DNA of 64,000 nucleotides from positions 35,152,492 through 35,216,491 of the forward strand of contig NC_058133.1 of NCBI RefSeq assembly GCF_016433145.1. The letters are read 5' to 3'. Of this stretch, positions 4,918-63,794 are shown in pieces. The DNA is from Gracilinanus agilis. Taxonomy: Eukaryota. Below the pieces are notes generated by a model. It was not told the DNA's origin, made no database searches, and saw nothing but the letters and a program-made list of their open reading frames with translations. A program made the translations under genes and the position numbers. How positions within the stretch are numbered: position 1 is the stretch's first letter; each line of letters begins with the position of its first letter.

Positions 4918-7170
4918 TCAGCGGATGCCCTGGTGGATGAGGCTGCTTTTGGCTGCACTCGCCTTCTCCCGCTCCCGCCGCTGCGCAGGATCCAGCTCAA
5001 AGCAGCGCCACAGGCGCAGGGTCTCGTCAGCAGCGGCTGAGGCCACGGTACAGCCGTCGGGGCTCATGGTCAGGCTCAGCACTCGGGCCGTGTGACCTTT
5101 GAGCTCAGCCACCTTGGCCATGCTGGGGTACTTCCAGATGACCAGCTGGTTCTGGGCAAAGCCATGGCCAGAAATGAGTTCTTTGTAGTGTGGGGACCAG
5201 AGGATAGCGCACACCTGGGACTGGGCATCCACAGCACTGAGACATGCCCCTGAGCAAACGTTCCAGATGCGGATGTGCCGGTCGCTGGTGCCACCTCCGG
5301 TGGCCAGCACGTTGGACTGCCAGGGACACCAGGCCACAGCCTAGCAGAAGAGGGGAAGAACAAGGGTTAGGAGGGCACCAACCCCACGTGGCAGCCCCCC
5401 TGCCCCAAGCTGCCCCAGCCTCTCACCTTGACTGCTCCCACATGCTGAGTGAAGGTCTGCAGGGGTCCCCAGCCCCCATCGCCAGGGGCACTGGGCCACA
5501 CGTTCACCAAGTTGTCATTGCCACCACTAGCCAGGTAACGGCCATCAGGGGACCAGCGTAGGCCACACACTTCTTGGCTGTGTCCACTCAGTGTGGCTAC
5601 ATGGTGTTCAGCCACTCGGACATCGTGGTGATGGACGTGGCCAGACCGAGACCCACTGGGAGGAGGAGATGGCTACTAAGATGGGGACTCAGAGGCCCTT
5701 CGTACCCCCAGCTGTCCAGTCCAAACAAACCTCGCCTCCCTCCCAGCAGGACCATGCATGACAAGATGTGTATGTGTGTGTGTGTGTGTGTGAGGGAAAG
5801 GGAGGACTGAGCCGGATGGATGGAGTACACTCAGAGCCTTCGGGGACGAGGGCCCAAGCTCAGACCTGGAAAGGATGTAGCTGTTCCAGGACAGGGCGCC
5901 CACACGGGCTGTGTGGCTGCTCATGTTTCGGAGCCGTTTCTGCTGCTGGACGTCCCACAGCTAGGGAGAGAGGGATCGATGATCAGAGGCCCTGTCTCAG
6001 ATTGTTGCTGCCCCTCAGGGCCCCTGGGGGTCAGGGAGGAAGATCTGGGCCTCACCTGAACCTCTGCACTGCTGGTGCCCACAGCCAGGTAGTTTCCCTC
6101 CTTGATCCAGGCCACAGAGGACACATAGTCCCCGGGCCGCTCTGTCTGCAGCAGCTGCAGGATCTCCCCGGAGCCTGCACTCCACAGGTATACTGATGTG
6201 TCCAGAGCCACAGCCAGCACGTTGCCACAGCTCCAGTCCATGAGGTTCAGGTCTAAGGCAGAGAGTAGAGGGAGGCTGCATCCAGGATTACTGACTCTCC
6301 CCATCTCGCCCTGACTCCCAAAGCTTCCCAGGGCCACTCACAGTAGTCATTGCGGATCTCGGGGGCGTCTAGGATTCGGTCAGGGAGGGAGGGGATGTAG
6401 CGACAGGTCTTCTTCCTGCTGGAGCCTGGGGTGGCCTTCTGACTATAGAGCACCCGAAGGCTGTTCTGATAGCCCTCAGGGGCATTCTGGGGCTTCCCAC
6501 TGAGCCGGAGGATCTTGGCTTCTTCCACATCGAAACCATTCAGGTTCAAGGACCAGGCTTTCTGCTGCTCCTGAGGAGGGCAGGGGTCAAGGGCAGGAGG
6601 GTCATGGACCAGCTTTCCTCCAAGAATGCCCTGCTCTTGTCTGTGGGCAGGTGACTTCCCAGTGGCTGCATGTCTTGTTCAGTGTCCCATCCACCCCCCA
6701 CCCCCCCGCCCACCTCCCCCACACACCTTCCTGGTGGGCGTGTGGTTGGCTGGTTGATTCTCCTTGCTTAGCAGGAAGCTGGCTACCTCCATCTGGGAAG
6801 TGCTTCGATGGGGGATGTAGCGATCCCCCCCGGCTTTACTGGGGGTGCTCTGTGTCTTAGAACTAGATTTGCCTGAGAAGAAAGACAGGCTGGAAGGGTT
6901 TGTCCTATCCCATGACTCCCAAGCCAGGCCACAAAGGTCTGTTCTTCACACATTCCCCCCATCCTAGCCCCAGGTCCCCTTGTCCTTACCAGGAGTCCGG
7001 CCCGGCGTTCTACTAGAGCTATGGGATCGGTTGGCCGTGCGCATTGGGGAAGGGGGTGGCCCAGGGGTTTCCTTGGCTTTGCGCTGCCATCGGGCAGGGG
7101 GTGCATTGACAATAGATGTGTCCAGCTGGAGCAGTGAATGCAGGTCATTCTCAAACACAAACTGAGCCAT
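4918..7170 (-). CDS. CDC20: Cell division cycle protein 20 (APC/C coactivator), 499 aa
   Basis: Coding exons in transcript order 7170-6990, 6872-6727, 6570-6342, 6252-6056, 5960-5866, 5655-5427, 5340-4918 (1500 nt, GT-AG). Contains the C-box DRYIPHR, KEN box, KILR motif, CRY box, WD40 repeats and the terminal IR tail (HQGIR*). Confidence 0.98.
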
Positions 7171-7239
7171 GGTACCAGACCTGGAAACAGAGGCCAGCAG
7201 TCCTCAGAGCTCTTGAGGAGACGCAGGGAAATGACCAAA

Positions 7240-13480: not shown

Positions 13481-13924
13481 GGAAAAGAAAATAAGTAGAG
13501 GCTTAATGAAAACAATTGCCCAACTCCATGCATTCTCTTAAAAGGTTGGTATTCAAAAAGATTTTGAAACTCTTCATTGGCTCAGAGTCCCTGTGAGGCA
13601 TCAGACTAGCACCAAGAGCAAGACTGGGGAGTGAGCTCATCTGAATGAATCCTTTATTCTCAGTGAGCATCTTTCTCCTGGTAGGGCTAAGTAAGGCTTC
13701 TTTTGTTAACTGCTGGATGGATTACAAGTGTTTTATTTCATGCTCCATTTGAACCTAAACTATCAGGAGACTGGCCTGAGTGAAGCTCAAACTATTACAA
13801 CTGACACTGATACACATCTATACACACACAAATAAATACATTTAAAATGTGTGTTAAATGCCATGTGATCTGGGGCTTTAGGGAACGAGGTAATCAATCA
13901 GACAAAGCATTTGGGCTGAGGCTT

Positions 13925-17417: not shown

Positions 17418-20400
17418 TCAATAAACTGAGCTGGAGCTCACATGGGAAAGTAATGGGGCTAAGGGAGTCCCTGGCAAGCATTCGTGTCCTGGAGCTCTAG
17501 GGAAACGTACTTTGTCCAAGGGCTGGTGGCAATGATTTGAAGGTGGGGGAGGGTGGGACAAGTGAGGCAGGTAGGAGTAGTTGTCAATGTGAGTGGTGGG
17601 GCCAAGCTCAGAGTCTGTAGGGGCTGGGGCCAGGGGTGGGGACCAGGACCCCAAGCAGCCAGCCTGAAGCAACACAGGGTAATCCGGCTGGGATTGGCCA
17701 TCCACAGACTCAGAAAGGACCTCCAAGAGGCTGGGTTCCTCTTCTTCATCTACACCTGAGGCTGAGGCCTTGGGCTAGAAAATATGAGGTAAGGGGCTGT
17801 GAGGGACAAAGTAGAGCTTATCAGGAATGCCAAGTCACAACAGCATCACTCACCTGGCTCAAGGAGGCTGGGGGCTCAGTGAGGAAACCTCCAAGAACCC
17901 GATGAAGGTCAGGAAGTGGAGGCCATAGGGTCTGCCACAGGGCCCTGCACAGGGAGGGAAGGGGTGAGACAGGCATTGCTGATAGTATAGGGCTCTTCTA
18001 GAGGAAAGTAAAAGGGACAGTGGGAAAGGGGCAGCAGTGAGTACCCAGGGCCCTTGTACTCTAGCACTGGAGCTCTTACAAATGGACCCTGCCACTCACT
18101 TGGGCAAATAGCCCCCCACTGGGGTGGCCTGTACATGTTGGGTCCTGCTGTACCTCATTTCAGGCTTCAAAAGTTGCCCCCTTGGTCTGTTCTAGGAACA
18201 GAGTGTCCTGTTCCTCCCCTGCCAGTTGCTCTAGAGCCCACTGTCCTCTCTCAAGACCTCCCACAGCCTAAAGGTCAAGGCATGGCAGGGCTGGCTAGTG
18301 CCTGCTGCCCATGAGCTGCCTGGGACAATGGTAGAACTAGGGTCTAGCCCCATCTTGTGGGACTAGAGCCAAGCAGCCTCGAAGTCCCTCACTAATATGG
18401 AATTGCTCCCTTCCTGGCCCTGGAGGATCATAGGGCCTCAAGTCTTCCCCCAGAAAGGATTGGCCCACTTTGGTCTCCTCTTCCTATCTGTTCTACCTGA
18501 ACTAAGCCAAAGACCAAACCCTTCCAGGCTTCAATCATGAATCTTGTCAAAGCCTTTCTGTTCCAGTCTGAGACAACCTCAGCCCCTAGGAAGACAGTCC
18601 AGCACCCAGGACAGTGCCAAGGTAAGAGATGCCCTGGGGAATCACAGCCTATCTTGGACCCTTAACTGCTTCTGTCTTAAATAATGAAACTGTCCCCCAA
18701 GTAGGCCCAGCACTGGTAGCATCCATGGAAAGAGGGGAAAGATCCTTGAGAATAGTGGCCAAAGGAATGGGGTTGGGGGAGATGGGGGTGGGTGGGAGGG
18801 GAGGCTGCTTCTTCATTGGTGGCTTGCAGCTCTCCTCTCACAAACAGGAATCAGACTGCTGTTTTTCTTGACTTCCAGGCCTGTTCTCTTTGTCACTGCT
18901 CTGGGGCCTAACAAGTCTAACTGTACCCCACCCCACAACAGCCCGTTAGGTGTTTGAAGTCAGGGATCTCATTCCTAGAGTCTTTTTTCTCCACACTAAT
19001 CACCCCTAGGTTCTTTGATCAGTCATCAGATGACATGGACTCTAGGCTCTTTGCAATCCCCTCCTCTAGACACTTGAACGATTAAGTCAGTGCAGGGCAG
19101 AGGATGGAGAAGGCAGAGTTCTTGCCTCCTGCGGCTCTCAATGTGGGCCAAAATCACATCCACTTTCTTGGCCACCGAATCCCTGCTAAAATTCCTGCCT
19201 CCCCTTTGAGATCATATCCAATTTTTGCCTAGTTTTGCCTCTATTCCCAGCCCCTGGCACAGGGCCTGGCATATGCAGTGGTTCAGTTGTGACAACTCTT
19301 TATGCCTCCATGGACTATACTGTCCATGGGTTTTTCTTAGGCAAAGATAGTGGAGTAAGGCAAACAGTGTTTAAGGGACTTGCCTAAGGTGAAAGGCACA
19401 TCTAGGAAAGATCTGAGGCAGGAATCAAACTCAGGACTTCTTGAATCCAGGTCTTGGACCCTCAATGCTACTGGAACTTTGTTAGATGAACTCCTGTCTA
19501 GCTCTAACCCTTCCTCACTTTTTCCTTAGGAAGTGGACTTTTTGGTACCAGAGGAGAATATGTTCTATCTATCCCTCCTGAATCTCATCTTGGCAGATTC
19601 AGTTCAATTGCTCTTTGGCCCTTTGTGGCTCCTGACCCTGTAGTCATTCAGGATTAGTGATCCTTCCAGGTTTGTCACCTGCAAATTTAATGAATATGCC
19701 ATCTATTCTACTCTGGACCTAGTTATTTACATGGTGTCACTATCATTAGAATATGAGCTCCTGGAGCAACTAGGTGGCTCAGTGGATAGAGAGCTAAACC
19801 TGGAAATGGGAGGTTCTGGGTTCAACTCTGACCCTGCACAAGTCACTTATCCCCCATTGCCTAGCCCTTACCACTTTTCTGCCTTGGAACCAATATCTAC
19901 TATTGATTCTAAGATGGAAGGTAAAAGTTTTTTTTTTTAAAAAGGGAAATATGAGCTCCTGGTTGGCAGGGATCCTGTTTGTGCCCTTTGTATCTCCAGT
20001 AGTTAGCACAGTGCCTGGCAGAGTTAGCACATGATCACTATTTGTTGACTGACTGATGATATTCTTATCTAAGTCATGGAATAAAAAGAAAGAAAGAAAC
20101 ATTAGAATAGCACAGGGCCAGGCACAGATCTCCTGGGCATTCGTTCTACTTTCCCCTGACCACAATGACTGTGAACCATTAACAACTCCTTTTTGAGGAT
20201 GGCCACTTAACCTGCTCGGAAGCCGTTAGTTCTTATCATCTATTATGAAATCCCTCTAATTTTTATCATCTAGTCCACATCTCTTTATCTGTAAGAACTT
20301 GATCAAAAACAGCTTTTCTAAAATCTAGGTAAATGCTATGCTTGCAGCATCCCCATACCAGTCCACTCACTCTGAGAAAACCTGCTGAGAGCAATCCCCT

Positions 20401-23400
20401 TCTTATGAAGCCTGAAGAAGCATAAGGTACAGAAATGGAGAGGAAGTCCTGGGGCCACCCCTGCTTTGGATTAAAGGCTGAAGGTTCAGGAGAGAAAGGA
20501 AGGGGAGGGGAACAGCAGGTTAAGAAGGGGTTTAAGGAAGAGATTTGGATTCACAGGTCCTAACTTAAGCCTCTTGTCAAGGGGTTGAAAGCACTCATCA
20601 GGGGAAAACACCAAGGCCTGTAGCTTGGTGAGTCTAATTAGCAAAATGAAAAGAATGAGAATTGCCCTGGAGCTCAGACAAATTGGGGATGGCAGAGTAA
20701 TGCAGCCCTAACCTAAGAGGGCACCGATCTGTACTCAGGTCTGGTGCCAATCCCAGCCCTGCCACTTAATATATCTGGGTGACCTTGTGCCACTTATTTC
20801 CTCTTTCAGGCCATAGTTGCTCTATCTTTAAGATCATGAGGTTGGACTAGATGACCTTTAAAGTCCCTCTACTGCTGGATCCACGATCCCATGGCCAGTA
20901 TTTAGCATGTTACAAAATGGTTCCAGGTCATATCTAATGCAAGTCAAATTCAGTGAATGTGATATGCTCCAGCTTTTCCAGGGTTATAGCATACTGCTTT
21001 GGATCAGTGCGTGTGAGTGAAGTGTGCTGCTACATACCTTATTACCAATGGCTGTGCTAACGGTTTTTAAAAGTCTTTGCTAAAATGCACAAAAAGAAGA
21101 ATACAGGAGATGGAAACACTGCCAGCTCCCAAAAGAAGTTTGCTATAACATGAAAGCAATAGTTGGATGTAACTGAGTGATATAAATGTGGTCCTAAAAT
21201 AGGAAGTGATGTTTGACTATCTGGATCCACTGTGCAGAATCTTAGAAAACATGCAGGTGAAATAAAAGAAAAAGCCAAAGCTGCATCAGCCTTTTGTGGT
21301 TTGCAAACAATCATGAGGAATAGAGTTGTTACAACAATCAAATGGTGTCTCTTTTGGCAGACAGTTTGAAGACTGCAATCATCCATGCATTCCTTTTAGT
21401 ATAGCAGCCATTCAGGCAGAAGCATTAGCTGATTCATGGCAGGGAAAGTAAATGGAAATGAGTCAGACAGAGAAGGAACTTTTACTGTGCTTGTGTGACT
21501 GCTTTAAAAACTGAAGAAAGTGGATCCACTGATCAACACATTTTTCATGTAGAAGAAACAGGCTTATCCTACAAAAGAATGTCTTCCAGAACTTCTATTT
21601 CTAAGAAAGAAAAAAACTCTACCTGGATTTAAAGGGTCTAAAGCTTTCTTAGCATTTGGAGGTAAGTCAGAACAGTATTTTCAATCAAAATCTTGAAATT
21701 CTCAGGCTCTGAAAGGCTACAACCAGTGATTGCTTCAAGCACAGTGACTCAAAGTATTTTCACAGACTTTTCCCTTCAAACTATTTTAATCTAGCTGTTG
21801 GAAAAGATTTCAAGGATAATGATATAAAAAGTAATTTTGATTTTAGAAAATGCTATTGTGTGAAAATGTAAATGTGCAAATTCAGGAGATGTGGATAAAA
21901 TTCTGTGCACCTCCAGCAATCTTTATGAAAGACTTAAGGAAAGAGAAAATAATTCAGTACACTTTGCTAAGATCTTTTAAATGACAATAACATTTTCAAC
22001 ATATCATCAGTGTAGGCTTATCTATATCTATATATATTTATGTTAAATTAGTAAATTTATTTTTAAAAATTTTGATTATATTTTCTATTGGGCTATCATG
22101 TTTTGGTAGTAGCTAGGTAGGACAGTAGATAAGAGTGTCAGGCCTGGAGTCAGAAGGACCTGGTTCACATCTAGCCTCAAACACTTCCTAGTTGTGTGAC
22201 CCTGGAAAAGTCACTTAACCCCCACTGCCTAGCCCTTACAGCTCTTCTGCCCTGGAACCAATGCATAGGATTGATTCTAAGGAGAAAGGTAAGAATATCT
22301 GGGAAATAAACAAGGAAAATAGAGGATCTATCATAAGGAGCCCAACCTCCAGAAGAGATCCCTGTGCCTTGGTGAAATGAATTCTGGAAGACCAGATACA
22401 AAAAGATGCCTGGCAGTGTGTGTCCTTAAGATTTGCTTAGGTGAGGAAATCCAAGAAGTTCAAGGAAGAAACATAGAGGAAAGTGCTTCAAGTGGGTGAA
22501 GAAAGCCCCATAGAGGGAGGAAGCAAGGGACATAGCTGCTGAGTGTGTGCTGAGGAACAGAAGGAGGAAGGAGATCTTGGGAATACTAAGGAGGCCTGAC
22601 AGTGGAATGTGGCCTCCTGGGCATGTCCAGCTGGCTTTCCTGCAGGCACCTCACAGTTAGCATGACCAAAGCAGGAGAATATAGTTCCTTTCCCCCAAAT
22701 TCTTCTGACCTTCCTGACTTCTAGGTACCTCCTCCTCTAAGGCACACCCCCTCACAGCCTCCTCCCCATTCAAGACAGTCTGCTGCAAGCTTTTGTTTTG
22801 ACCCCCATATCTCTTGAATCCAGCCCCTCCACAAGAGTGCTTAGCTATCATCCTCTTCACCCTGATGATGGCAAGGGCCTCCTATCTGGTCTCCCTGGCT
22901 TGCCTGTCTTACATTCTTCTTCTCTATCCCCACCTCCCTGCTAAATGATATTGTTAAAGCTCAGCTTTGACCATGTCACCCTTACTAAAAATCTAGTGGG
23001 ACCTTTGGCTTCCAGGATGAAAAAAACAAATTCTTCTGTCTGTCTGGTTTTTAAAACTTTTCACAACCAACAATATTTCCCTCCCCACTCTCTAGTCTAG
23101 CTACCCTGGCTTTCTTCAAACAAGACAATTACACTATCTATCTTTGGGCCTTTGCCCAGGCTGTGCCCAATGCCTGGAATGCCCTCCCTCTTTTTTTCCA
23201 CCTTTCAGAATACCTAGTTTCCTTCAAATCTCAGCTTAAGTACCCTATCCTTTCCCAATCTCTGATTCCCTCAGCTATTAATACTGTTTTTTTGTGGGGT
23301 TTGTTATTTTTTGCATGAACCCTTTTGGTAGTCTTGTGAAGCCTAGGGACACTTTCGAGAATATTGTTTTAAAATAAAGTATATAGGATCACAAAGAAAA

Positions 23401-26400
23401 CAAATTCTATTGAAATAAGTGATCAAAAAACAACCAAAAAAAACCAAGTTGACAGCCTCCCTATCCCCAACCAAGAATCCCTGAGCTATAGTGTCTTCCT
23501 CCAAAATTGCTTTGTGCCCATTTGGTATGTTTTTGCTTTGCAGAGTGTCAGGCATATAGCAAGCACCTAATAAATGCTTACTGACTGCTTGAGAGTGGCC
23601 TGTGATTTCTCCTTGCTAAAGGCAAAACAGCTGCCTGCATGATGGCTTATCTTTCCAGAGCTGGCAGATGGGAGGAGGGAGCCACTTATCCTGGCCCTGA
23701 CCATAGGCTGGCCCCTCATCTGAGAATTCAGAGAGGAGAGAAGTCTGCCTGGATAAAGGCTGATGTGCCCCACCAGGCATGTTAGGAGAGTAAATCTCAA
23801 AGCATCCAAAGAAAACAAGGATGGCTGATAAAGGTAAGGAATTTTTCAGGGAAAGCCCAAACTCAAATAATTTAGGATAACCTTGTTCAGAAAGTGTCTC
23901 CTGGAGGGATAAGGGAGACAAAGATGAATCAAAAAGCAGTTCCTGTCCTCTTGGAGCTTGAAGTACAGGGGCAGGGAGTGGAAGGAGGGAAAGGCAACAC
24001 AGGTTAATCGGAAGAGATGGAGAATAGGAGAGCTGGCTCAGCTAGCTGGCTGCCATCTAGCCTTCTGGGATTTATGTCACAAGACTCCCCTTCCTCACTG
24101 AGGCTCTCCATTCCTACTCAGCACCGTCATCAAGCAAAGATTTAACCTCACTAAATCATTACTTAGTGTTTACTTACCTGCAGTACACAATGGTATCTCC
24201 TGGGGGCCGATTGGGACAAGGTGGCTTTTGTCTCACTTTCCCAAGCACCTGGCCAGGTGCCTTACAGCAGGGAGTGGACATGTTTGTTAAACTGAATAAC
24301 TTTTGCACTTAGAAGGGCAGAACAATCAGGCAGCTACTACTGCCCCAGATTCCTTCCCGGCCTAGGCTCAGGAAGAGACTGCTCAGATTCTGAGACAACT
24401 GGCACATTGAATCAGCAACCCAGAGAAGTGGACAAAGCACCTACTACATTCCAAGCCCAGTGTTATATTCTGAGAATCCAAAGAAAAGCAAAATCTGCCT
24501 CTGCCCTCAAAGGTATCCCATTCTAATGGGGGAAGAGAAGCTTTCCTGGGCCACTGACTAGAGAGCTGGCCTCAGGGCAACAGACTGGGGTTCAGATCTC
24601 TCTGACATCTACAGGCGGACATCTACTGACTCTGGGCAGGTCAGGGCTCAGTTAGCACCAGACAATTAGAAGGTGAGACCTGTATTGGCAGAGAGAGGAG
24701 TTTCCAATACAGGACAATGACCATACAAGCCCACTCCTCTAAAAAGCAGTCCAGACCACCCAGCCTTTCCACTGTACTCTGTCACACCCCAGAGGGTTCT
24801 TTCTTCTCCTGAACCCCTTCCTTTTGGGTGTTATCTCCCCCATGAGATGGTAAGATCCCTGAGGGCAGGGGTTCTTTCTTTTTAGTATCTGTTTCCAGTG
24901 CTGGGCACACAATAGACACCTAATAAATGTTTACTGACTGACTGGCTAATCACACACAAAGCAGACACCAGGAGAGAACACAAGCTTTCCAAGAGGCTTG
25001 GAAAGACTTCCTGAAGAAGGGGAAATTTGAGCTGAATCTTGAATAAGAGGAGGGAAAATATTCCATGTATGGGGGAAAACCAAGGCAAAGGTGCAGTCAG
25101 GAACTGTTGGGCTCTGTGTGAGAGGCAGGTAGTGAGCCAAAGTGGTGGGATCCATAGAGTTTGATCCTAAGAATCCTTGGAGCTGACCAAGGTGGGGGTG
25201 GGGTGGGTGGTGCAGGGGGGATGATATGGTCGGACCTGCCCTTTGGAGGCTGAATTCAGGAAGGAATGGAGTGGAGCGTGAAGAAGGCAGGGCTGAAGGC
25301 TGAAGGTGATGAGGTTGGTAGTGGTGCCAGAGGACAGAAGGGGCCCTTATGAAGGTAGAATCAACAGATCTTGGCAACAGACTGGATGTGAGGGGAGGGC
25401 TAAGAGAGAATGAGGAGTCAAAGATGACAAAGATTAAGAAGATAACCAAGCCTGAAGGTCTGCATGACTGAGAGGCTGGTGGTGCCCTGCACAGTCATAA
25501 GGACACTGGGCAATGGGGAGGGCTGGAGGGGAAAGACAATGAGTTTTAGATAGGGCATGTTGAATTGGAGATGCCTCTGGGACTAGCTGGTGGCGATGTC
25601 CAGGCTCAGTCAGGAATTGGAGGGCTGTGTATGAGAAAGGGGGTGGGGGATGGGGCCTGGACTCTGGAGGGCTTCAGATGGCATCATCAAGGCAGCTGGT
25701 AGAAGATGGGCAGTCAGGAGAGAGGTTTGAGCTGGGCAGCTGGGGCCTGGATCATTCCAATGGCTCATAATGTCTAACTTCGTTCAGAACAAGTCCTGCT
25801 GGGTCATCTTTAACAGGATTATTAAGTAGGTATGTGTGGCCCCTTCCCAAAAGCACAAAACACAGAGTTCCTTCCAAAGGAAGCCCATCCTCTGAAAATA
25901 ATTATCAGGAGATTTTCAACAAACCAAGTTCCCAGACTTGAGGTTATCCAGGTTTATCTGACCATGACATTCCCTGCTCAACAAAGTGCTGTGGCGCCTC
26001 CTGACTCCAGGATTACACTAAACTCTTCCTGGTGACCCTTAAGCCCCTCACCACCTGTCTTCCCGCCCCAGCAGGCGGGGCACTGCCTTCCTTTCTGTCC
26101 CTCGCAGCGGACCTGCTCCAGGCCTTGGCATCGTCTACCCCACGTGTCTGGAGGCTCTTCTTCCTCCTCTTCCCCCTCTTCTCCCCGCCCCCCATCCGGC
26201 TGCCTCCTTCAAGAAGATGAGGCCAGGACGGCAGCCGCAGCTCCGAGGAGGGGGATGGAGAGCGCTGCTTAGAAGACTCCTCCCGCTCCTACTCTGCAAC
26301 CATCTACAGCACGGCGGGGCGGGGCGGAGTTAGGAGGGGTGGTCAGGCTCAGGCACGCAGGGGCCTGGGGGAGGGGCATCTACCTGAATCGCGCCGGGAA

Positions 26401-29400
26401 AAGGCGCCGCAACACGAGACCGAGACCCAGGAGGCCACCGAAGCTCAGCGTCAGCACAGTGCTCGTCACCACGGAGATCCAACCTAGCAGGGGGGTCCGG
26501 GTCGCGAAGGTCAGAATGGCTGGGCCAGAGCGCCTCCTTTCTCCGACCGACCGACCGCCTCGCCCTGGCCCCGCCCCCTTTCTCACCCAACGCTGCCATA
26601 CCCGCCCTACCTCGCCCTCTGGAGCGCATTGCGCAGCCGCGGCCCTCTCCGCCCCAGCCCCTCACCGCGGTCCGGCGCCATCTCCACGAGCGCAGGCGCA
26701 GACCAGGCGCTCCAAGGTCCGTAATAGGTGGGGCCGTCTGGCCGTGCACGCAGCTGCAGCCTGTACTGGGCTCCTGGGCGGAGCTCCAGCATCTCTCCCA
26801 GCGCATCCGGAGGCGGCTCCAGCACCTACACCGAACCGTGCGGAGGGGGCGGGGGCAGAGGCCTTCAGCGGCTTCTGATTGGTCCGCGTGCACAGTCATC
26901 GTGGACGGGGGGAGGAGTTTGACACACCTTTGTCCTACCCTACCGACCCTCTCCTCACACTCTCTTGCTTGTCCGGTCATCCTCGCACCTCCCTATTTTC
27001 CCCTCTTCCTGATTCAGCCTTCTTGCCACGCATCTCTTGACACTCCCGTGCCTAGCGGCTCGGATGTTCTTACACGGACCTCCCACGCAGAAGCTGATCG
27101 TGAATACACCCCGACACTTTGGCGCAGTCGCCACACGGATGTTGCCATCCCGACATAACCACGCCGGGATACCCCAAGGGAGGCTGCCACCCCTTCGCTT
27201 ACATATCCTCTACAGCCTGGCCCCCACGAGCTGCCCACACTCCCATGCATTCCCTTCCCGGCTTGCCCAGCACGCCTGATGGCAGTGCAGTGAGGCTCCG
27301 GCAACAGGGGCTCAGGAGCTGGGACCTCGAAGCCCTCACCTTCCAGTGTCTGTGCTTCTGCCCGGAGTAACGGAGCTGATAGTGGGTCTTCCCAGGAAGC
27401 CAGGGCAAAGGTGGCCTCCAGCTCAGCTTGAGCTGTCCACCCTGTCCAGCTGTCCACTGCAGCTGTGGGGCTTCAGTGAGAACTGGAGAGGCAGGAGAGA
27501 GGGCGGGAGCAGCACTCAGGGCCGTTATGGGGGTGTGCAAAGGTTTGGGGTTCAGGAGGAGAGGGTGTGGGAGCTGAGGAGAGGGCCGGGAAGATAGTGT
27601 CTCACCAATTTGATGCATCCAGAAGGGAGTGCCAAGGAACTGATGGATGGTCCCCTGCTCATTGGTTATTTCCACCAGGATGTGAATGGTGCTGTCATTT
27701 TGGGACTCGAAGTGACATTGGGAGACTGAGGTTTCCTCTTCCCTGGAGTCCATTTTCTTACATTTCTTCCATGCTGGACCCCTGTGGAGAAACCCCCTCC
27801 CCCCACCATGGCCCATGATAGGCTTACTGAGGTCCTGAGTCATTTTTAAAACCCTTTCTTTCTGACTTAGTAACAATTCTAAGATAGAAGGGCAAGGGCT
27901 AGGCAAACAGGGTTAAGTGACTTGCACAGGATCACACAGCTAGGAAATGATGCCAGCTTTGAACCCAGGACCTCCCATCTCCAGGCCTGGCTCTATCAAC
28001 TGAGATACCTAGCTGCCCTTCAGAACCATTTATTTAAAAAAAAAATCCTTACTTTCTGTCTTAGAATCAATACTATATATTAGTTCCAAAACAGAAGAGT
28101 GATGAGGGTGAGACAATAGGGGTTAAGTGACTTGCCCAAAGTCATCCAGCTAAGAGATGTCTGTGGTCAGATTTGAACCCAGGATACCTCTGGTCTCTAG
28201 ACCTGGTTCTCAATCTACTGAACGACCTCACTGCCCCTTGTTCGGGGCCATTCTTAACAAGGCTGTTCCTAACTGGTCCCATCCCTGGCACTCAGCCCAC
28301 ATAGCCAATCTATTGTCGGGTTGTGTTGCCCTGGTGCAGACCCTCCACTCCTCACTTGGGTGATTGCAAGCCTCCTAATTGGTCTTTCTGCTTCTGTCGG
28401 AGGAACCCTTCTAAAATGTAAGTCTAATCCCATCCCTCCCTTTCCTACTCACATTGAGTGGCTCCCTGTCCCCTCCAGGATCACAGAAACCCTGTATGGC
28501 TCCTCTTTCACTTCCCTCTTTTCCATGCACTCAGGGATCCAGTGGCTCTGGCCTCTTTGCTCTTCCTTGGGCTTGACACTGCACTCCCCCACCTCTGTGC
28601 TGTTATACTGGCTTTGGCCTACTCCTGGAATGGTCTACACCTTCATCTTCACTTCCTGGCTTCCTTTCAACACTCAGCACAAAGCCCTACCGTCCTCCCC
28701 ATCTCAGGTGGCCTTCCGTCCAGCCTGTGCCTCTCTTAATATGTACATGGCTGTGTGCATGCTATCTCCTCCATTAGAATGTGAGCTGCTTTTGCCTTTC
28801 TTTGTATGCCCCCACTTAGCTCAGTGCCCAGGACGGGGGAAAGTGCTTGATAAATGAATGCCTGTTGATTGACTGCTTGACGTGTCCTGGTTTGGGAGGG
28901 CCAAAGAGCCTAGCTGGTCAGGATCCTGCCCCCTTCGGAAGAGCCCAGTGAGTCCAGGCAGGGCTGAGGCCTGCTTCTGTAGGGGAAGGCCTGATCATGG
29001 ACAGCTCACCTGACTGCCCATCACCTGCTCTGGAGATTATTGTTGTAGCCATCCCCAACGATAGGCCCACTGTGGACCAGTGTACTGCCATCTGCTGTGC
29101 AAAGTTCAGCATGGCAAAGCTTGAAGGGGCTTCTCCTTAGTAGAATCTCTCAGCTATGAAACCGTGGTAAGAAATGCAGGCCGGGGCCCTGAGTCATTCT
29201 GCAGGACATCATGCCAAAGCAATTGTTTGGGTTAAGTCTTTTTTGTCCTGGACCTGGCTCTTGATCTCCAGCAGTTCAGAGAACGGCCGGCCTGGTCAGG
29301 AAGGAAAGACAGGGCTTGCTTGTCCAGGGTGGCTTGAAGTGGATGGGAATAACCCAATACCTGGGGATAGCTACCCCCCCTACCAAGTCCTTGAAGACTA

Positions 29401-33100: not shown

Positions 33101-33836
33101 TATTATCTCGAGTCTATAGGAATAGTATTCTCTTCCAGACTAGCCCATGAGCTCCTGGGGAGCAGAGAGCCTGTTTTTGCCTTTTGCCCTTTGTATCAGT
33201 GCTTAGCTCAGTGCCTAGCACATGAAGATGCTTAACCAGTGCTTGTTGGTATGGCCAGGCAGCTCAATGGATAGAAGGCCAGTTCTAGAGATGGGAGATC
33301 CTGAGTTCAAATCTAACCTCAGACACGTCCTAACTCAGCAAGTCATTTAACCCCTATTGCCTGGCTCTTATTGGTCTTCTGCCTTGGAACCAAGATTCTA
33401 AGAGAAGATAAGGGTTTAAAAAAATCAATGCTTGTTGATTGATTGATTCTACAGAGGCAGGTTTAGATGTGGATGGTAAAGGAAAGAGGGTTGACCCCAT
33501 TGGAGCTGCTCTGTGACCCCCAAGAGGGGACAGCTCTCTCTCCTTCATTTAATCTGGAGCCTCTGTGACCCTAGGCCCAGGCCTCTCCTCACCCCAGACT
33601 TCCAGCCCTGCTGTCTCACCCCTGCCTGCTCACCTGTCTCCAGGGCAGCTGCCAGCAGTCCTCCAGTGGTAGAAGTAGCCATGGGAGGTGGTGGAATGGG
33701 CTGGTCCTTGCCACTGGCATGTGACACGTTCCAGGTCCTGAGTGAAGCAGTGCAGCCCAATCTCCCCTGGGCCAGGAGAGAGAGACTGTGCTGGGCCCCA
33801 GCCAAACGTCCCTCCCTCCCTGGTCCCCAGTACTTC

Positions 33837-33874
<38 letters not shown>

Positions 33875-36800
33875 TCTGCTTTTCTCCCTATCCCTGTTCC
33901 TCTACACCATCAACCTTCCCTCCCCCAGGTGACTCACTTGCATCCTGTGGCAGGGTCACAGTCACAGGAGATGACCAAGGTCCCCAGAAACCCTTGAGGG
34001 AGATCCCATCAGGCTTCCTCCGGAGCTGGAGCCAATAGGAGGTCCCAGGTTGAAACCCTGAGATGATACAGCTTCCACCAATTAGATCTAGGGACTGAAG
34101 AGGATCATCATTGAATCAGAGAATCCAAGAAAGATGGGACTTGAGGGTTCCTCTAGTCCAAATCCCTTCTCCTCCTCCATGTAATCTGCCCTACTCACCA
34201 TATTCCTAGCAGGAAAGGGGGCATTTAACTTTTGCTTTGACATCTAGAATAATGGGGAACTTACTACCTTATAGAAGGAGGCTATATAGGAGATTCTTGT
34301 CATAAGACCAGCCTCCTGGGGGACTTCTATCTAAGTTGGTACAGGGATGAACCCAAGATTTATCCATAATGACCTTGACCCCACAGTGGCCCCTGAGAAA
34401 GCTCCTAATTCTTGGGCCATGGGAGACCCCCAGGCTCCAAACTGTCATCTCAGGGAGAGGAGAGAAGATGGGACACTAGGAGGCTGGATGTCCATTTCCA
34501 TCTATAACCAGAGGAAATATTCTGGGCTTAGGGTGAGAGAAGATGGGGCCAGAGAAATCTGGGTACTTCTCTGGTGGCTTGAAGCTGTGGTAGACCATCC
34601 CGCTGTGGCACTGTGTGTCCCCTGATGGCAGGTCCCTGGCTCATGTATCCTTTTTTGGAGGATCCCTCCATGGTGGAGTGCTGCTGTAGAGACTGAGCTG
34701 GAGTCAGGTCAGGCCTAGTGGTTTCAGTGGCCTGCTGGGGCCACCTCATGAATGGGCAGCACATGGGTGCTTGAAGCAGAGCTGTGACTGTGGGCTGAGC
34801 AGAGTTGCTGGGATCCAAAGGGCCATACTGGAGTTCGTGCTGCATGAAGTCACTAATTTCAGGGGGCTGCACCTCCCAGGTGACTTGCAGCTCCCCAGTC
34901 TGACCAGAAGTCATTGCAGTGATGCTCTTAGGTGGGGCAGGCAGGCCTAGGGGAGAGAACCCATCACCTCAGTGCTTCCCTCCAACCACTTCAAATGCTC
35001 TCCCCCAAACTACCCTGAGGGATCTCTCCCAGGGACTGAGGAAAGACAGGACTGTGAGCACAAGGCTAAAGAGCTAGGATACAAAGGGCTGAGAAGTGGT
35101 CTAGAGTCTTGTAAATCTAAAGAGCTTTAATTGAAAAGGAATGGAGGGGCAGCTGGGTGGTTCAGTGGATAGAGTGCTGGGCCTGGAGTTGGGAGGACTT
35201 GGGTTCAAATTTGACCTCAGACACAGCTGTGTGACCCTGAGCAAGTCACTTAATCCTGTTTGTCTAGCCCTTGCCCTTCTGTCTTAGAGTTATTTCTAAG
35301 ACAAAAAGTAAGAATTTCAGGGGAAAGAAAGAAAGATAGGAAAGGCAGGGGAAGGGAGAAAAATTGTCCCAGTGTCTCCAATAAGCCAGAAATCATAGTG
35401 AATAACTACAGTGTAGAAGGGAGAAAAACACTTAAGACTCAAATATTCACAAGAGTCAATATCCAGGAAAAAGGCTGGTAGGAAGACACATGGCCTTAGC
35501 TAATACACAAATATATTAATACCTAAAAAGGCACAATCAATGAAAATTAGTGGGAGGAAATCCCTGACAGGAACCTTATTCTAAAGACATAGGATGGAGG
35601 AGAAAGGGGGAAGCAGGATAGGATTGAGCAGGAGCAAATCCAGGAACTAGAGGAGGAAAGCAGGAGGGAAGACAAGTAGAGGCTGAAAACAAAATGTTCA
35701 TTGAACTACAGACTGCCTGGATAGAAACAGGAAAGAGATGAGAGGTTCAGAAAGGAGATCTCGAGACTGGAACAGAAGCATAATACGATTAGGATATGGT
35801 GAGATATTTCAGGATCTGCTGGGGATTTCTCTCTGCCAAAGCTAATAATTGATGATAATTTCATCTTTCAAAAGGTGAAAGCACCAACATGGTGGAAATC
35901 CTGGATGTGTTTCATCAGTGGAGAGGAACTTGGTGCTGCGGTAGAGGTAATGAGAAGCTTGAAGGAAAGTCATTATTGCCCCATACAATTTGTGATAGAG
36001 ATGGAGAGGGCATCTGGGAATAATCTGACAGGCACCATAGATTTTGAGAGAGCGGATTTGAAATGGTGGTACAGGGAAAGGATAGGCAGGGTCCCATGGA
36101 CTGAAATGCTACCAAAGAATGAAATTCAGAAGGAAGCAATTCTGATGAGGAGGAAAAATAGAAGACATCTAAAGAGACCAGTGTGGATGCACACTTGGTG
36201 GTCAAGAGCTTAGATGGTTCAGAGATCTGATGGTCAAGAGCTTCTTTGCCAACTTTGTCACCTTTACTGGGGTTACAACAGTATGGGGGGAAGGGGAGAG
36301 CCCAGTGGTTTGATACATTAACATTATGAGGTAATCATCATAAAATGCAAACTGCCAGAACCTAAAACAATAGGTAGAGCTAAGATCTGGATCTGGAGCC
36401 CATGTGGCCTAAGGCATCTACTGATGTTTGATACCTATGTTAACTGATCATTGAAGGTAAAGTAAGGACACTGAGATAACTGACTTGTCTTCTGGGATGT
36501 AGCCTTAGGGAAGGGTTAGGAATTTGGCAAGGTTGAGGTTCAGTTTAACTCAAGGTTACAGAAATCAATCATAAGCAATACAAGAGTCAGTTTTTTGAGC
36601 ACTCTTAAAATAATATCAAGATTAATGTATACCTGGATTGCTACACATTTGAACCCAGGACCTCCCATTTCTAGGCCTGACTCTCTATCCACTGATCCAC
36701 TTAGCTGCCTAGCAGTACCTTCTTTATAGAGTTTTTGTGGAATCCCATGGGATGACCTTTTACAAATATAAAATTGTTATCTAAATGTCAGGTTATGATT

Positions 36801-39800
36801 ATTACTGATTCAAGAGTCTTGAACAAGCTAAAAGAGGCAAGTAGATGAGTCAGTGGATAGAAAACTACAGTTGGAGTCGGGAAAACCTGAGTTCAAATCC
36901 CATCAAAGACACTTATTGGCTGTCAGCCTCCCTCTTCTTCCATCTTCACCTCAAATGCCCTTGGCAAGTCACTTAACTTCTAGCTACCCCAGTTTTCCCA
37001 TCTGTAAAATGGGATAATAACAACACCTACCTCCTAGAGTGGTTGTAAAGATAAACCAGGATCATATTTGTAAAGCACTTAGCAAACCTTGGAGCAGTAT
37101 ATGCATGCTAGTTATCGTATTTGGGGTTCGATGGAATAAGATGAAATTCCATGTGATCTGGCAATGCTAGGATGCAGAAATCAGTTTCCCAAGTATCAGA
37201 GAAGTCTAGAAGCTAGAGAGCTGAGGTTAGATGGCCACAAACGCTTTGTCCAGCTCTGGCCAGGGCATGCTGGGTACTCCAAGCCCCACTGGACACTTTC
37301 TTCCGGAGTGTGGAAGCCGGAAAGGCTGACGGGCTGTCCTAGGTGAGGGGATGGGGGCGCTCTGGCAGAGCTCACAGGCCCTCAAGATGTATGCTGCCTA
37401 GGTCAGGTCCCGCGATATCACATTTACTTCTGAGCAATCTATTTGAAGAAGGATCTATTTGGTAGGTGGCTGAAGGAACCCTGATGTTTGCCTGGGGAAG
37501 AGAAGGTTCTAGAAGGCCATGAGAGTGGCCTGTCATGGGGAGAAATTTGTTCTGCTGGAATAATCGGCAGCAGTGGAGTGGGGAAAGATGCAAAGAGATA
37601 AGATTAGGCTTAATGCCAGGGGAAACCCCCAAAGCCTTCTTAACAGTCAGAACAGACTCCAGATGGAGAGGGGCTTCTGCAGAGATGACAGGCTTCCCCT
37701 TCTGGGAGGTCATGAAGCAGAAGTGGGTTGGCCACTGCTCAGACATGTTAGAATGGGGGTTCCTTATGGGTGCTGGTTGGACAAGAGCCTTTGACATTCC
37801 TTCCAGCTTTTCTATTCTGATACAGAGCTGTGAGGAGAGAAGATTCACTACCAGGATTGTGGGTTGGGAGGAGGGCCAGGATGAGGAGGGAGGCCAGGAT
37901 TGTGGGGAAGAAGGAGGGCCACAGGGCTTTGAGGTGCTGTCAGGCCTTAGCAGTGCCAGAGCCTCACCCACGTTTTCCACGCTGAGCACTCGCTGGGTCC
38001 GGTTTTGGGCTCTGGCAGGGTCCCACAGCCACAGGGCCAACTTGGCAAAGAGACGCAGGCCATCAGCAGGCTGGACTTGGCAGACGTGCCGGATCCCTCC
38101 ACTGGGCAGTCTCTGGATGCTCAGTGGGCACACCTGGGGCTCCTCCCTGCGGGCCGGGCAAGGGTCTCAGGCCCCAGCGTGGAGACTGCCAGGGGAGAGG
38201 ATGCTGCCGTCCTGGCCCTCCCTGGCCCTGTTCCTCCCCTCTCCGTCCCAGCTGCCCTGCCTCCAGCCTGGCCCATAGCGCTGGCTCCCCACTAACCACC
38301 CCCAACGTTGGTTTTAGTTGGGGAGGGGTGCGAAGGGGACACTCCCTGAGGGAGGGGGAGTCGCCGCCCCGCCCCCTCTCCTCCCCTCCTTTTCTCTTCA
38401 CTTCCACCCCTAGCCCCAGCCCCGCCTGCAGGGCTTCCCGCACCCGGGGTAGGCAAAGAGGAGCTGGTAGGGCTCTCCATCTTGCCCGCCTCCCTGCTCT
38501 TCGTCCTCAGCCTGGATCTCCTCCTCATCCTCATCCCAGAAGCACGTGAGGTCCTCGAACTCTCTGGAGAAGCAGCGCAGGGGTTCGGGCTCATCCGCCA
38601 GAAGCTGGGCATCTGGGGTGGGGCGGAGAGCAAAGCCGGGGTGTCAGCCGGCGAGGGGGGCCCAGTGCCGGAGACTGGACCCGGAGCCGGGCTCCCAGGA
38701 GGCCAGAGACCGGAGTCATTGAGCCGAGCAGGCAGCACAGAGCTCTCTACCGGGGATTGCGGACATTGAGGCAGACCGCGCCCCTTGGAAGCCCTGGCTG
38801 GAGGAGGAAGCCCTAGGACCTCCGGAGGCAGGCAGGCTCCCAGAGGCCTCCTGGCGCTCGGTGAGAGGGAGGCTTTCTTGGGTCTGGGCGTGGGGGGTGG
38901 GGGTGTGATGGAGCGTGGGTCTCCGTGGCGCCCTGATCACTCTGGCCTGGGGCTGGCTCTGGCTTCTGGGTAAAAGCTCTTTTTCTAGAGGGGGCGGAGG
39001 GATACCGCAGGAGCCGCAGGGGACCTCAGCCGCTGGAGCGGGGGCAAAAGCTGCGCCCTCCAGGAGGAAGGGTGGGGGAGGCTCCTCTCAGGGACCCCAG
39101 ACCGTCTGCCCATGGTGTGAGGTTGGTTTCAGACTCTCGCCCAGTGGCTGGCCGGCTTCCTGGCTTGTAACCCATAGCTGAGGCACGGTGGCTGCACACA
39201 GTAGGTGTTTCATGGGAGTCTCTGGCCCCAGCGGGCAGGAGGTAGCCTAGGGCAGAGCTGGCCCCTGGCCCTTGGCTCTCCGGAGAGGTTAGCAACCCCA
39301 GACACGAGCTAATCCCAAAGCCAGCTCCCCGCTCCAAGATTCCCAGCCCTGAGGACAAGCAAATCACAGCTCCCAAGGAAGAGGGCCAAGGAAGAGCAGA
39401 GAGGCCAGCCAGCCAGCCAACTTCCGAGGAGGCAGCCTCTGAGTCACTGCACTGCAATGATGGAGCTCATCCTGACGTCTTCCAGTACCTCAAGTCCCTC
39501 CCGTGGGCACAGAACCAAAAAACCTTCAGTGCCTCCTTGTTGTTCACTGGTGAGCCCAGGGACCATCACACAACAGCCCTGGCCAAGGGCTTTTCTTGGC
39601 AAGGATACTGGAGAGGTTTGCCATTGCCATCTCCAGTGGCCTGAGGCAAACCTGAGGAGGTTAAGTGACTCACCCAGGGCCACACAGCTAGGAAGTGCCT
39701 GAGGTCACATTTGAACCCAGGACCTCTCATCACCACTCCTGGCTCTATGCACTACCTAGCTGCACCCTTACTCTAAGTCCTGAGTCTATGCACCCAGATC

Positions 39801-40672
39801 CCTCCAGCTCAACCTCTGCTGTGCTCTGAGCACTTGAGAGGTAGCTGGGCCTTATGGACAGGGAGAGCAGGCAGTCACCCCTTCCTGCTGGGTGACCCTG
39901 AGGGAGCTGCTTCACCTCTCAGCACTCCCCACTCCTACCCCTCTCCAAGGCGATTCAGAGAAGGACCAGCCTGCCTTGATAGAGGGAGCTCCTCACACTT
40001 GGGAAATTCTGGGTCCGCTTCTCAGCCTGTCGTTTCCTCTCTTTGCACCTTCACATTTTGATCCCCCTTTCCTTTCTCCTGAGCAATTCCAGCTCCACTC
40101 CTGGGCTACTTCCTGAGAGATGCCTCCTGACACCATGCCCCTGTTAGCCCTTCTCTCAGGAAATGAATGTGAAATTGGGGCTAACATGGCCCGAGCCTTT
40201 GGGTCTCCCCCAGTGCTAAGCACAGTGCTCTACACCCAGCAGGTGCTTTATGACGGCTACATTCCTGGTAGATTATTCCTAACCTCTCCCTCAACACTGT
40301 TACCATCCCCCCTAGAGTTAATGTTCCCCCTCTCTCCTGACCTTTCTCTCTTTCCAGGCTTCTACTCCCCCTCCTCTTGCCCTCCTTCCCCATATCTCCC
40401 CTTTGCCCCTCTCATTCTCCCCTCCTCCTTCCCTGCCCCTCACTTTCTTTCCCCCCCTGCCTCCTCCCTTCTCCCTTTCCCCTTGTGTCCTTTCGCCTCT
40501 TCCCTGTCCCCCTCTTTTTCTCCCTTACCTTGTGAGGCCAGGGCTTTGGGGGGACTTTATGGGGGGTCCAGGACCTCTGTTCTGCCCCCTTACCTTCATT
40601 GCTGACATGGGTGGTAGCCTGGCTGGGCAAGAGGAGGCAGCAGGTGACTAGGATGAATACCCAGCTTGGCAT
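17418..40672 (-). CDS. MPL: Thrombopoietin receptor (c-Mpl), 707 aa
   Basis: 12 exons in transcript order 40672-40594, 38612-38444, 38146-37968, 34946-34567, 34094-33938, 33766-33634, 27781-27606, 27482-27340, 26825-26666, 26483-26384, 17944-17854, 17774-17418 (2124 nt, GT-AG, phases consistent). Signal peptide [33 protein letters not shown] motif, TM WISVVT..., Box1 [13 protein letters not shown], Box2-like EPSLLEVL, and NYSYLP. Confidence 0.93.
19440..20420 (-). mobile_element. Degraded CR1/L3 fragments interrupted by a SINE (19762-19938, +) and an L2 end
   Basis: Reverse-complement CR1 RT-region remnants (TTTGTCACCTGCAAATTT; GGGCCAGGCACAGATCTCCTGG), with a SINE core inside. Confidence 0.55.
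21080..21900 (+). mobile_element. Tigger/pogo-like DNA transposon remnant (decayed transposase)
   Basis: From 21546 it translates to [32 protein letters not shown] (one frameshift), resembling the Tigger DDE-domain N(V/A)DETGL..K.MP.RT....EK..PGFK. Upstream HTH-region remnants are present and the block is AT-rich. Confidence 0.7.
22110..22295 (+). mobile_element. SINE1_Mdo-like SINE
   Basis: Shared SINE core and tail. Confidence 0.8.
24900..25620 (-). mobile_element. L2 LINE fragment
   Basis: Minus-strand translation [21 protein letters not shown] resembles the L2 ORF2 3' region, with L2-type termini nearby. Confidence 0.6.
26000..27250. promoter_or_regulatory. Intragenic CpG island over MPL exons 9-10
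   Basis: Dense CpGs, tandem GC boxes at 26316-26327, CACGTG at 26141 and ATTGG at about 26878. Confidence 0.6.
27850..28235 (-). mobile_element. Two adjacent SINE1_Mdo-like SINEs (about 27850-28020 and 28040-28235)
   Basis: Two reverse-complement cores, each with the TTTCTG(A/T)CTTAG...GGTTAAGTGACTTG...TTTGAACCCAGGA pattern. Confidence 0.8.
30134..30186. repeat. (TA)n(CA)n microsatellite
   Basis: Read directly. Confidence 0.9.
31816..32000 (-). mobile_element. Young SINE1_Mdo-like SINE with perfect 16-bp TSD, inserted in a MIR-like element
   Basis: GCTCTTCAGAAATCTT at 31800-31815 and 32001-32016, with a poly(T) tail. Confidence 0.92.
32113..32336 (-). mobile_element. Young SINE1_Mdo-like SINE nested in a MAR1/MIR-type element
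   Basis: Near-consensus copy with a long T-rich tail and an imperfect TSD ATTTA(G/A)GGTTTTCTT. Confidence 0.88.
33840..33870. repeat. (TG)15 microsatellite in MPL intron 5
   Basis: Read directly. Confidence 0.95.
35840..36195 (+). mobile_element. CR1/L3 ORF2 remnant (endonuclease-to-RT linker)
   Basis: Translates to [13 protein letters not shown]...SH....F...DFERAD...RIGRVPW.E.L...RRK...LKRPVW, the CR1 ORF2 signature. Confidence 0.75.

Positions 40673-44267: not shown

Positions 44268-63794
<19,527 letters not shown>

Follow-up and report, generated by a model that had tools for sequence, protein, structure and literature searches.

The MPL locus of Gracilinanus agilis

We analyzed a stretch of 64,000 nucleotides (the window) from the marsupial Gracilinanus agilis (NCBI RefSeq assembly GCF_016433145.1, contig NC_058133.1, positions 35,152,492 to 35,216,491 of the forward strand). 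The window contains no N and carries MPL, the gene of the thrombopoietin (Tpo) receptor, TpoR. W515 of human TpoR is regarded as the receptor's built-in brake, and it is a main mutation site in essential thrombocythemia and myelofibrosis. In Gracilinanus, the corresponding codon in exon 10 of MPL encodes Arg. Comparison with other vertebrates indicated that Arg is the normal residue of marsupials and platypus, and that Trp is probably a eutherian novelty.

MPL was found as 12 exons on the minus strand, all open, in frame, and in order, from 40672 to 17418. The coding part of exon 1 (40594-40672) starts with ATG at 40672 and encodes the signal peptide. Exons 2 (~38615-38442) and 3 (~38146-37965) were placed by tblastn exon matches within 37965-38615, and exons 4 (~34946-34567), 5 (~34096-33938), and 6 (~33765-33632) lie within 33632-34946. 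Exons 7 (~27781-27606) and 8 (27483-27340), with boundaries good to ~2 nt, occupy 27340-27781. Two features of MPL orthologues were recognized in the extracellular part: the first WSXWS-like motif, GPWSS, in exon 5, and the membrane-proximal WSAWS in exon 9 (26666-26825). Exons 10-12 encode a single transmembrane (TM) helix, Box 1, Box 2, and a C-terminal YLP tyrosine motif. Specifically, exon 10 (26384-26483) encodes the TM helix and the juxtamembrane RRLFPARF(R), exon 11 (17854-17944) Box 1 (LWPPLPDL), and exon 12 (17418-17774) Box 2, the YLP motif, and a marsupial-type C-terminal extension ending in SSSSVY before the stop codon.

A phmmer search with exons 7-8 returned the NCBI protein P0001, named 'thrombopoietin receptor [Gracilinanus agilis]', which contains the exons of this window and for which the Pfam domains EpoR_lig-bind and fn3 are recorded. 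The full-length profile match to MPL proteins had an E value of 2e-239. Downstream of MPL, on the same (minus) strand, the exons at 4921-6337 encode the CDC20/Fizzy WD40 domain (E = 3e-52), and a CDC20-type gene also directly follows MPL at the crane locus. The NCBI name of P0001, the tblastn exon matches, and the CDC20 synteny together identify the gene as the MPL orthologue and not a paralogue.

Exon 9 ends in APDR G/gt and is joined to exon 10 through a split Gly codon, giving APDRGWISVV, which matches APESGWVSVV of other marsupials. The canonical splice of intron 9 runs from GT at 26665-26664 to AG at 26485-26484 and yields this same junction. P0001 differs here, in that ~55 residues (about 575-629) between exons 9 and 10 are translated from intron 9 (26484-26665, minus strand). 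The peptide of exon 10 itself is identical in P0001, as is the join of exons 10 and 11. The 3' end of P0001 is also odd, splicing to 17269-17195 instead of reading through to the TGA at 17420-17418. In marsupials, a conserved stretch of ~45 residues extends MPL at the C terminus beyond YLP (...HQPLDKVxFPRA...ECLPxTP...LLSxVSSSSxY), encoded at the end of exon 12 (17418-17560, minus strand). It is absent from platypus, eutherian, and sauropsid MPL, and the read-through to TGA in the window fits this extension.

Intron 10 (17998-26383, minus strand) accounts for ~8.4 kb of the ~23 kb gene. MPL spans 23-25 kb in Tasmanian devil and possum versus ~7.8 kb in platypus and ~5.8 kb in crane. On the other side of MPL, a long open stretch at 57334-58413 on the minus strand encodes fibronectin type III domains (E = 5.5e-21), with a TM-like segment at 57390-57467.

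Arg at the W515 position

Exon 10 is 100 nt long (26483-26384, minus strand), has codon phase 1 at both ends, and is bounded by intact splice sites (ag/GT TGG ... TTC AG/gt). Residue equivalences were taken from a MAFFT alignment of 30 MPL proteins. In this alignment CGG at 26409-26407 encodes the equivalent of human R514, CGC at 26406-26404 places Arg at the position of W515, and CTT at 26403-26401 places Leu at that of Q516; TTC (26400-26398) and CCG (26397-26395) complete the juxtamembrane motif RRLFP. The Arg codon is likewise CGC in Tasmanian devil and is CGA in platypus, while Leu at 516 is common to all marsupials and platypus.

An earlier note, drawn from the letters of the window, had described this 100-nt exon and its Arg, and both were borne out. 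The same alignment reproduced the other substitutions that it listed, namely Leu for Q516, Val at position 499, and Gly for S505, although Val at position 499 is uninformative, as the aligned non-human eutherians have Leu there. The note had further pointed to one extra TM residue and to an additional Trp in a following ALWQ. The helix, counted from its Trp to its last Leu, indeed comprises 24 residues versus 23 in all 110 Trp-bearing eutherian sequences, consistent with an exon of 100 nt versus 97 nt. Its Gly-rich core, SFGGLLGLG (26419-26445), is two residues longer than in Australian marsupials, and the exact place of this insertion within 26419-26430 is ambiguous. Exon 11 starts with G GCC CTG TGG CAG (17944 onward), the additional Trp being TGG at 17937-17935.

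When all six frames of the window, and with them the 8.4 kb intron 10, were scanned for [KR]W.FP, W.FP, and hydrophobic runs, no other TM or juxtamembrane exon was revealed. We also checked the codon in sequencing reads. Run X1, from the same species, contained 0.88-1.00 of the sampled words at a word depth of ~25; its contigs were identical across exon 10, and over the covered region 26250-26900 they showed no substitution and two small intronic indels. Run X10, from a relative that is ~93% identical, gave a contig over 26388-26900 with six differences in exon 10, none of them at 26395-26412. This relative therefore retains CGG CGC CTT, together with the same helix length. Runs X21 and X22, from a more distant relative, could be aligned only partially and were uninformative for the codon. 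Run X1 may come from the assembly's own sample, and the cross-species evidence therefore weighs more.

RRLFP was present in Gracilinanus, Trichosurus, Petaurus, Vombatus, Macrotis, Sarcophilus, Sminthopsis, and Antechinus, eight species of four orders. Genomic DNA of Tasmanian devil (13678-13767 of the retrieved locus) reads CGG CGC CTC TTC CCG, and that of platypus (7138-7233 of the retrieved locus) reads AGG CGA CTC CAC CCA, in both cases with intact splice sites. At the crane locus, a peptide search did not locate exon 10. The checks proposed in the earlier note, in reads and in other marsupials, thus left the Arg codon unchanged.

Could the Arg codon nevertheless be an artefact, arising from faulty assembly or sequencing, from a pseudogene or paralogue, or from the choice of a wrong exon? 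The NCBI model P0001 is partly wrong, with its intron-derived sequence and different 3' end, and this gives the idea some footing. We regard it as extremely improbable, given that the X1 contigs agree across exon 10, that the motif recurs in seven other annotated marsupial genomes and, between intact splice sites, in the genomic DNA of platypus, and that the window offers no competing exon, keeps all 12 exons open and in frame, and preserves the CDC20 synteny. The RRLFP-bearing MPL is a genuine, selectively maintained wild-type receptor gene of Gracilinanus agilis.

Residue 515 across vertebrates

We tallied residue 515 in 144 MPL sequences containing Box 1, collected from three protein searches and two cluster look-ups. 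Trp was found in 110 sequences, all of them eutherian, with Afrotheria and Xenarthra represented (elephant, dugong, aardvark, tenrec, two sengis, sloth, and armadillo); the motif is (R/K)W(Q/E/K)F(P/L), and the helix always has 23 residues. Arg occurred in 16 sequences, 15 from the eight marsupial species and one from platypus, with RRLFP in the former, RRLHP in the latter, and a helix of 22 or 24 residues. Cys was present in 14 sequences, from ducks, goose, swan, crane, penguin, tortoises, terrapin, and the salamander Pleurodeles, as RC(A/S/T)FP on a helix of 19-21 residues. Trp515 was seen in no sampled non-eutherian, that is, in none of the marsupials, the one monotreme, the birds, the turtles, or the one salamander among the 144 sequences.

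Gly was found in two sequences of Otolemur garnettii (RGQFP, helix of 23 residues), an NCBI and a UniRef entry (P0103 and P0162) that apparently derive from one assembly. Nycticebus, a relative of Otolemur, has RWQFP. Gly515 in Otolemur reflects either a true exception among eutherians or an error of the assembly.

In place of the motif (R/K)WQFP, which has been called unique to TpoR, the window and all marsupials have RRLFP, platypus has RRLHP, and sauropsids and the salamander have RCxFP. Since it is missing from all sampled non-eutherians, it defines eutherian TpoR and not TpoR in general. For the same reason, the suggestion that Arg is a peculiarity of this one receptor did not hold: the RRLFP of Gracilinanus is shared by all eight marsupial species, and platypus has RRLHP.

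The comparison also bears on how Arg515 might be tolerated. The earlier note had proposed that the extra TM residue, by re-registering the helix, and the new Trp of ALWQ are natural suppressors of Arg515. Both features are present in this window, and a 24-residue helix is also found in the didelphid relative and, in length only, in platypus. However, the dasyurids, wombat, possum, glider, and bilby combine RRLFP with a 22-residue helix, one residue below human, and ALWQ is limited to Gracilinanus and bilby, with ALRQ in the dasyurids, wombat, brushtail possum, and sugar glider. As the Australian RRLFP marsupials lack the longer helix and mostly lack ALWQ, neither feature explains the tolerance of Arg515 across marsupials, and we consider these two suppressors very unlikely.

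Polarity of the Arg and Trp states

Polarity was worked out by hand, by parsimony, with the accepted species tree (amphibian, (sauropsids, (monotreme, (marsupials, eutherians)))) as the framework. With the amino-acid states C, C, R, R, and W, there is a single best history of two changes, which places Arg in both the mammalian and the therian ancestors. The likely course of events, judged from these states, would be a change from Cys to Arg on the mammalian stem followed by a change from Arg to Trp on the eutherian stem, with Arg ancestral to mammals. The codon path can be traced in single steps, from TGY to CGY and then from CGG to TGG, the latter being a CpG transition. In addition, the Leu516 codons (CTC/CTT) of monotreme and marsupials are at least two steps from the outgroup Thr, Ser, or Ala codons, which favors common inheritance of 'RRL'. 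On balance, and with the help of the common Leu516, we favor Arg as the state of the mammalian ancestor, although this is not proven.

GC-biased conversion was considered as a source of Arg and rejected. The exon region is ~68-70% GC in opossum, devil, and platypus alike, so that no lineage is singled out.

These results reverse the direction assumed at the outset. The earlier note had treated Arg as a deviation from Trp; because the outgroups carry Cys and only eutherians have Trp, Arg appears to be the older state in mammals and Trp the eutherian novelty. Its description of a compensated pathogenic deviation was thus right in one part, as a residue that is oncogenic in humans is fixed as wild type here (in eight marsupials and platypus), and wrong in the direction of change and in the specific suppressors.

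Probable co-changes on the eutherian stem

Across the whole protein in the 30-species alignment, 22 columns were at least 85% fixed in eutherians and differed from the state common to all five marsupials and platypus. Seven of these fall in residues 501-550: S505 (Gly elsewhere), W515, Q516, H526, A527, Y542, and R544. This compares with ~1.7 expected (binomial P ~0.001, for a segment chosen post hoc, after the data had been seen). The clustering suggests that the TM-juxtamembrane-Box 1 segment was remodeled on the eutherian stem, where G505S, L516Q, Q526H, T527A, F542Y, and T544R may have accompanied the gain of Trp.

S505 is the other hot spot of myeloproliferative neoplasm (MPN) mutations, and it too is eutherian-specific, with Gly in marsupials and platypus and Gly or Thr in outgroups, in an alignment that depends on gap placement around position 505. 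As aligned, the residues at both MPN hot spots of humans, S505 and W515, are specific to eutherians. Conversely, G505, L516, Q526, T527, F542, and T544 are common to all Arg515 species and are candidate compensators; Leu516 is the one neighboring change common to every Arg515 species.

Tolerance of Arg515 in marsupial TpoR

In human TpoR, every residue at position 515 except Trp, Cys, and Pro is activating (PMC5374145). The human mutant W515R, with RRQFP, is constitutively active (PMC10313314, Table 2), and its helix is predicted to unwind from Q516 (PMC10313314, Tables 1-2). As Cys is non-activating and Arg activating in the human receptor, the Cys of the outgroups would be 'safe', and the Arg of marsupials and monotreme would not be safe, in the human context. 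In the W515K background, activity is strongly dependent on L512 and is weakened by single substitutions at L512, R514, Q516, F517, and P518, and nearly all variants that reach the cell surface still respond to Tpo (bioRxiv 10.1101/2025.09.09.675271).

Because a residue that is oncogenic in humans is normal here, either the surrounding sequence makes Arg tolerable or the animal tolerates more basal signaling. On the first account, Arg515 would activate the human receptor only in the eutherian context, that is, with a Leu-rich 23-residue helix, L508/L512 packing, and Q516-F517-P518. The marsupial context, with its Gly/Val-rich helix, Leu516, and, in most species, Val at the equivalent of position 512, would neutralize Arg515. 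The helix is predicted to continue through R-R-L in this context, so that the JAK2-activating dimer may not be favored. Human W515R would then be a reversion to the ancestral residue, now incompatible with the later eutherian background through epistasis, or entrenchment.

We modeled 101-residue TM-juxtamembrane fragments with AlphaFold2, using clade-only alignments of eight sequences. For the Gracilinanus fragment the prediction was a helix from residue 2 to 28, through R-R-L, a one-residue break at the equivalent of Phe517, and a second helix from residue 30 to 40 (predicted local distance difference test score, pLDDT, 82-87). The macaque wild type gave the same pattern, with a helix from residue 2 to 27, a break at F517, and a helix from residue 29. 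This likeness, the intact gene, and the conservation among marsupials are indirect signs that the marsupial receptor may function normally.

On the second account, the marsupial and monotreme receptor is more active without ligand because it lacks the Trp brake, and this is offset elsewhere in the animal, for example through reduced expression of the receptor, more powerful negative regulators, an altered Tpo set-point, or the C-terminal tail that is particular to marsupials. RRLFP is only one residue away from the constitutively active human RRQFP (PMC10313314, Table 2), Arg at this position activates the human receptor (PMC5374145), and marsupial MPL does have a conserved extra C-terminal segment. 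Set against this, many positions of the TM helix are not the same as in eutherians, among them some that W515K activity needs (bioRxiv 10.1101/2025.09.09.675271). The predicted helix is wild-type-like and continuous through R-R-L, and the strict conservation of RRLFP over four marsupial orders suggests a tuned rather than a leaky function. We therefore regard high basal activity as unlikely.

Overall, the explanation that we prefer is that RRLFP is genuine and marsupial-wide, that Trp is a eutherian novelty, and that Arg515 is tolerated through its sequence context; we put its probability at roughly three in four. On this reading, the Trp515 brake looks like an invention of placental mammals and not a universal feature of TpoR, and W515R like a return to an older residue that became harmful once the eutherian background had changed. 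Several points weigh against the explanation. The inclusion of exon 10 in the mRNA is supported by gene models of several species and by intact splice sites and is, to that extent, presumptive. Echidna MPL was not found in the protein database, leaving platypus as the sole monotreme sampled. Parsimony at the nucleotide level is tied, the second history being a parallel T to C change in monotremes and marsupials with TGC to TGG (Cys to Trp) in eutherians. The segment in which the eutherian changes cluster was, as stated, a post hoc choice. As in any other TpoR, signaling by the marsupial receptor probably depends on ligand, a view that follows from viability and from ~80 million years of marsupial conservation, the latter figure being our own estimate of the divergence. 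Finally, the likeness of the predicted Gracilinanus helix to the macaque wild type, compared without a W515R control, is weak evidence.

More tentatively, it is possible that non-eutherian mammals silence TpoR without the Trp515 brake, and that this brake was gained on the eutherian stem along with S505, Q516, H526, and A527. If so, the TM-juxtamembrane segment of marsupials and platypus would hold transferable suppressors of W515R/K/L that leave the Tpo response intact, with Leu516 and Gly505 as the first candidates. The co-changed positions 505, 516, 526, 527, 542, and 544, together with the natural sequences from which chimeras can be built, could point to ways of silencing mutant MPL while sparing Tpo signaling.

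Comparison with known systems

The sequences used here were already public and named; the new part is the cross-species comparison at position 515. Reviews describe RWQFP as 'unique to TpoR', without remarking that the motif is restricted to eutherians. Marsupial TpoR has been noted to lack a cysteine pair in domain 2, which was used for disulfide assignment (PMC10850085). In the searchable full-text literature, we found no mention of site 515 in connection with marsupials, platypus, eutherians, zebrafish, or compensated deviations.

Gracilinanus MPL is orthologous to eutherian MPL/TpoR and shares its 12-exon layout, two cytokine-receptor modules with WSXWS-type motifs, single TM helix, Arg514, Phe-Pro at 517-518, Box 1 (LWPPLPDL), Box 2, YLP tyrosine motif, and CDC20 neighbor. 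It differs in having Arg515 instead of Trp, Leu516 instead of Gln, and Gly505 instead of Ser; in its Gly/Val-rich helix of 24 residues, whereas the eutherian helix is Leu-rich with 23; in Gln-Thr at 526-527, where eutherians have His-Ala; and in the ~45-residue C-terminal extension. Sauropsid and amphibian MPL, with RC[A/S/T]FP, agrees with Gracilinanus MPL in Box 1 and in the Arg-x-x-Phe-Pro frame where the membrane meets the cytosol, but carries Cys515 on a helix of 19-21 residues, Cys being one of the two substitutions reported not to activate the human receptor. The human MPN mutant W515R (RRQFP) resembles the marsupial form in Arg-Arg at 514-515 followed by x-Phe-Pro. However, the human change is somatic, constitutively active, and oncogenic, whereas the marsupial form is germline, fixed in four orders, and set in another helix next to Leu516.

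Compensated pathogenic deviations, in which a human disease residue is wild type in other species, implying epistasis with the background, are a well-known phenomenon. The present case resembles them in that a residue pathogenic in humans is normal in another mammal. It differs in that the 'pathogenic' residue is apparently the older one and the human residue derived, and in that the site is a gain-of-function cancer hot spot and not a site of loss-of-function disease.

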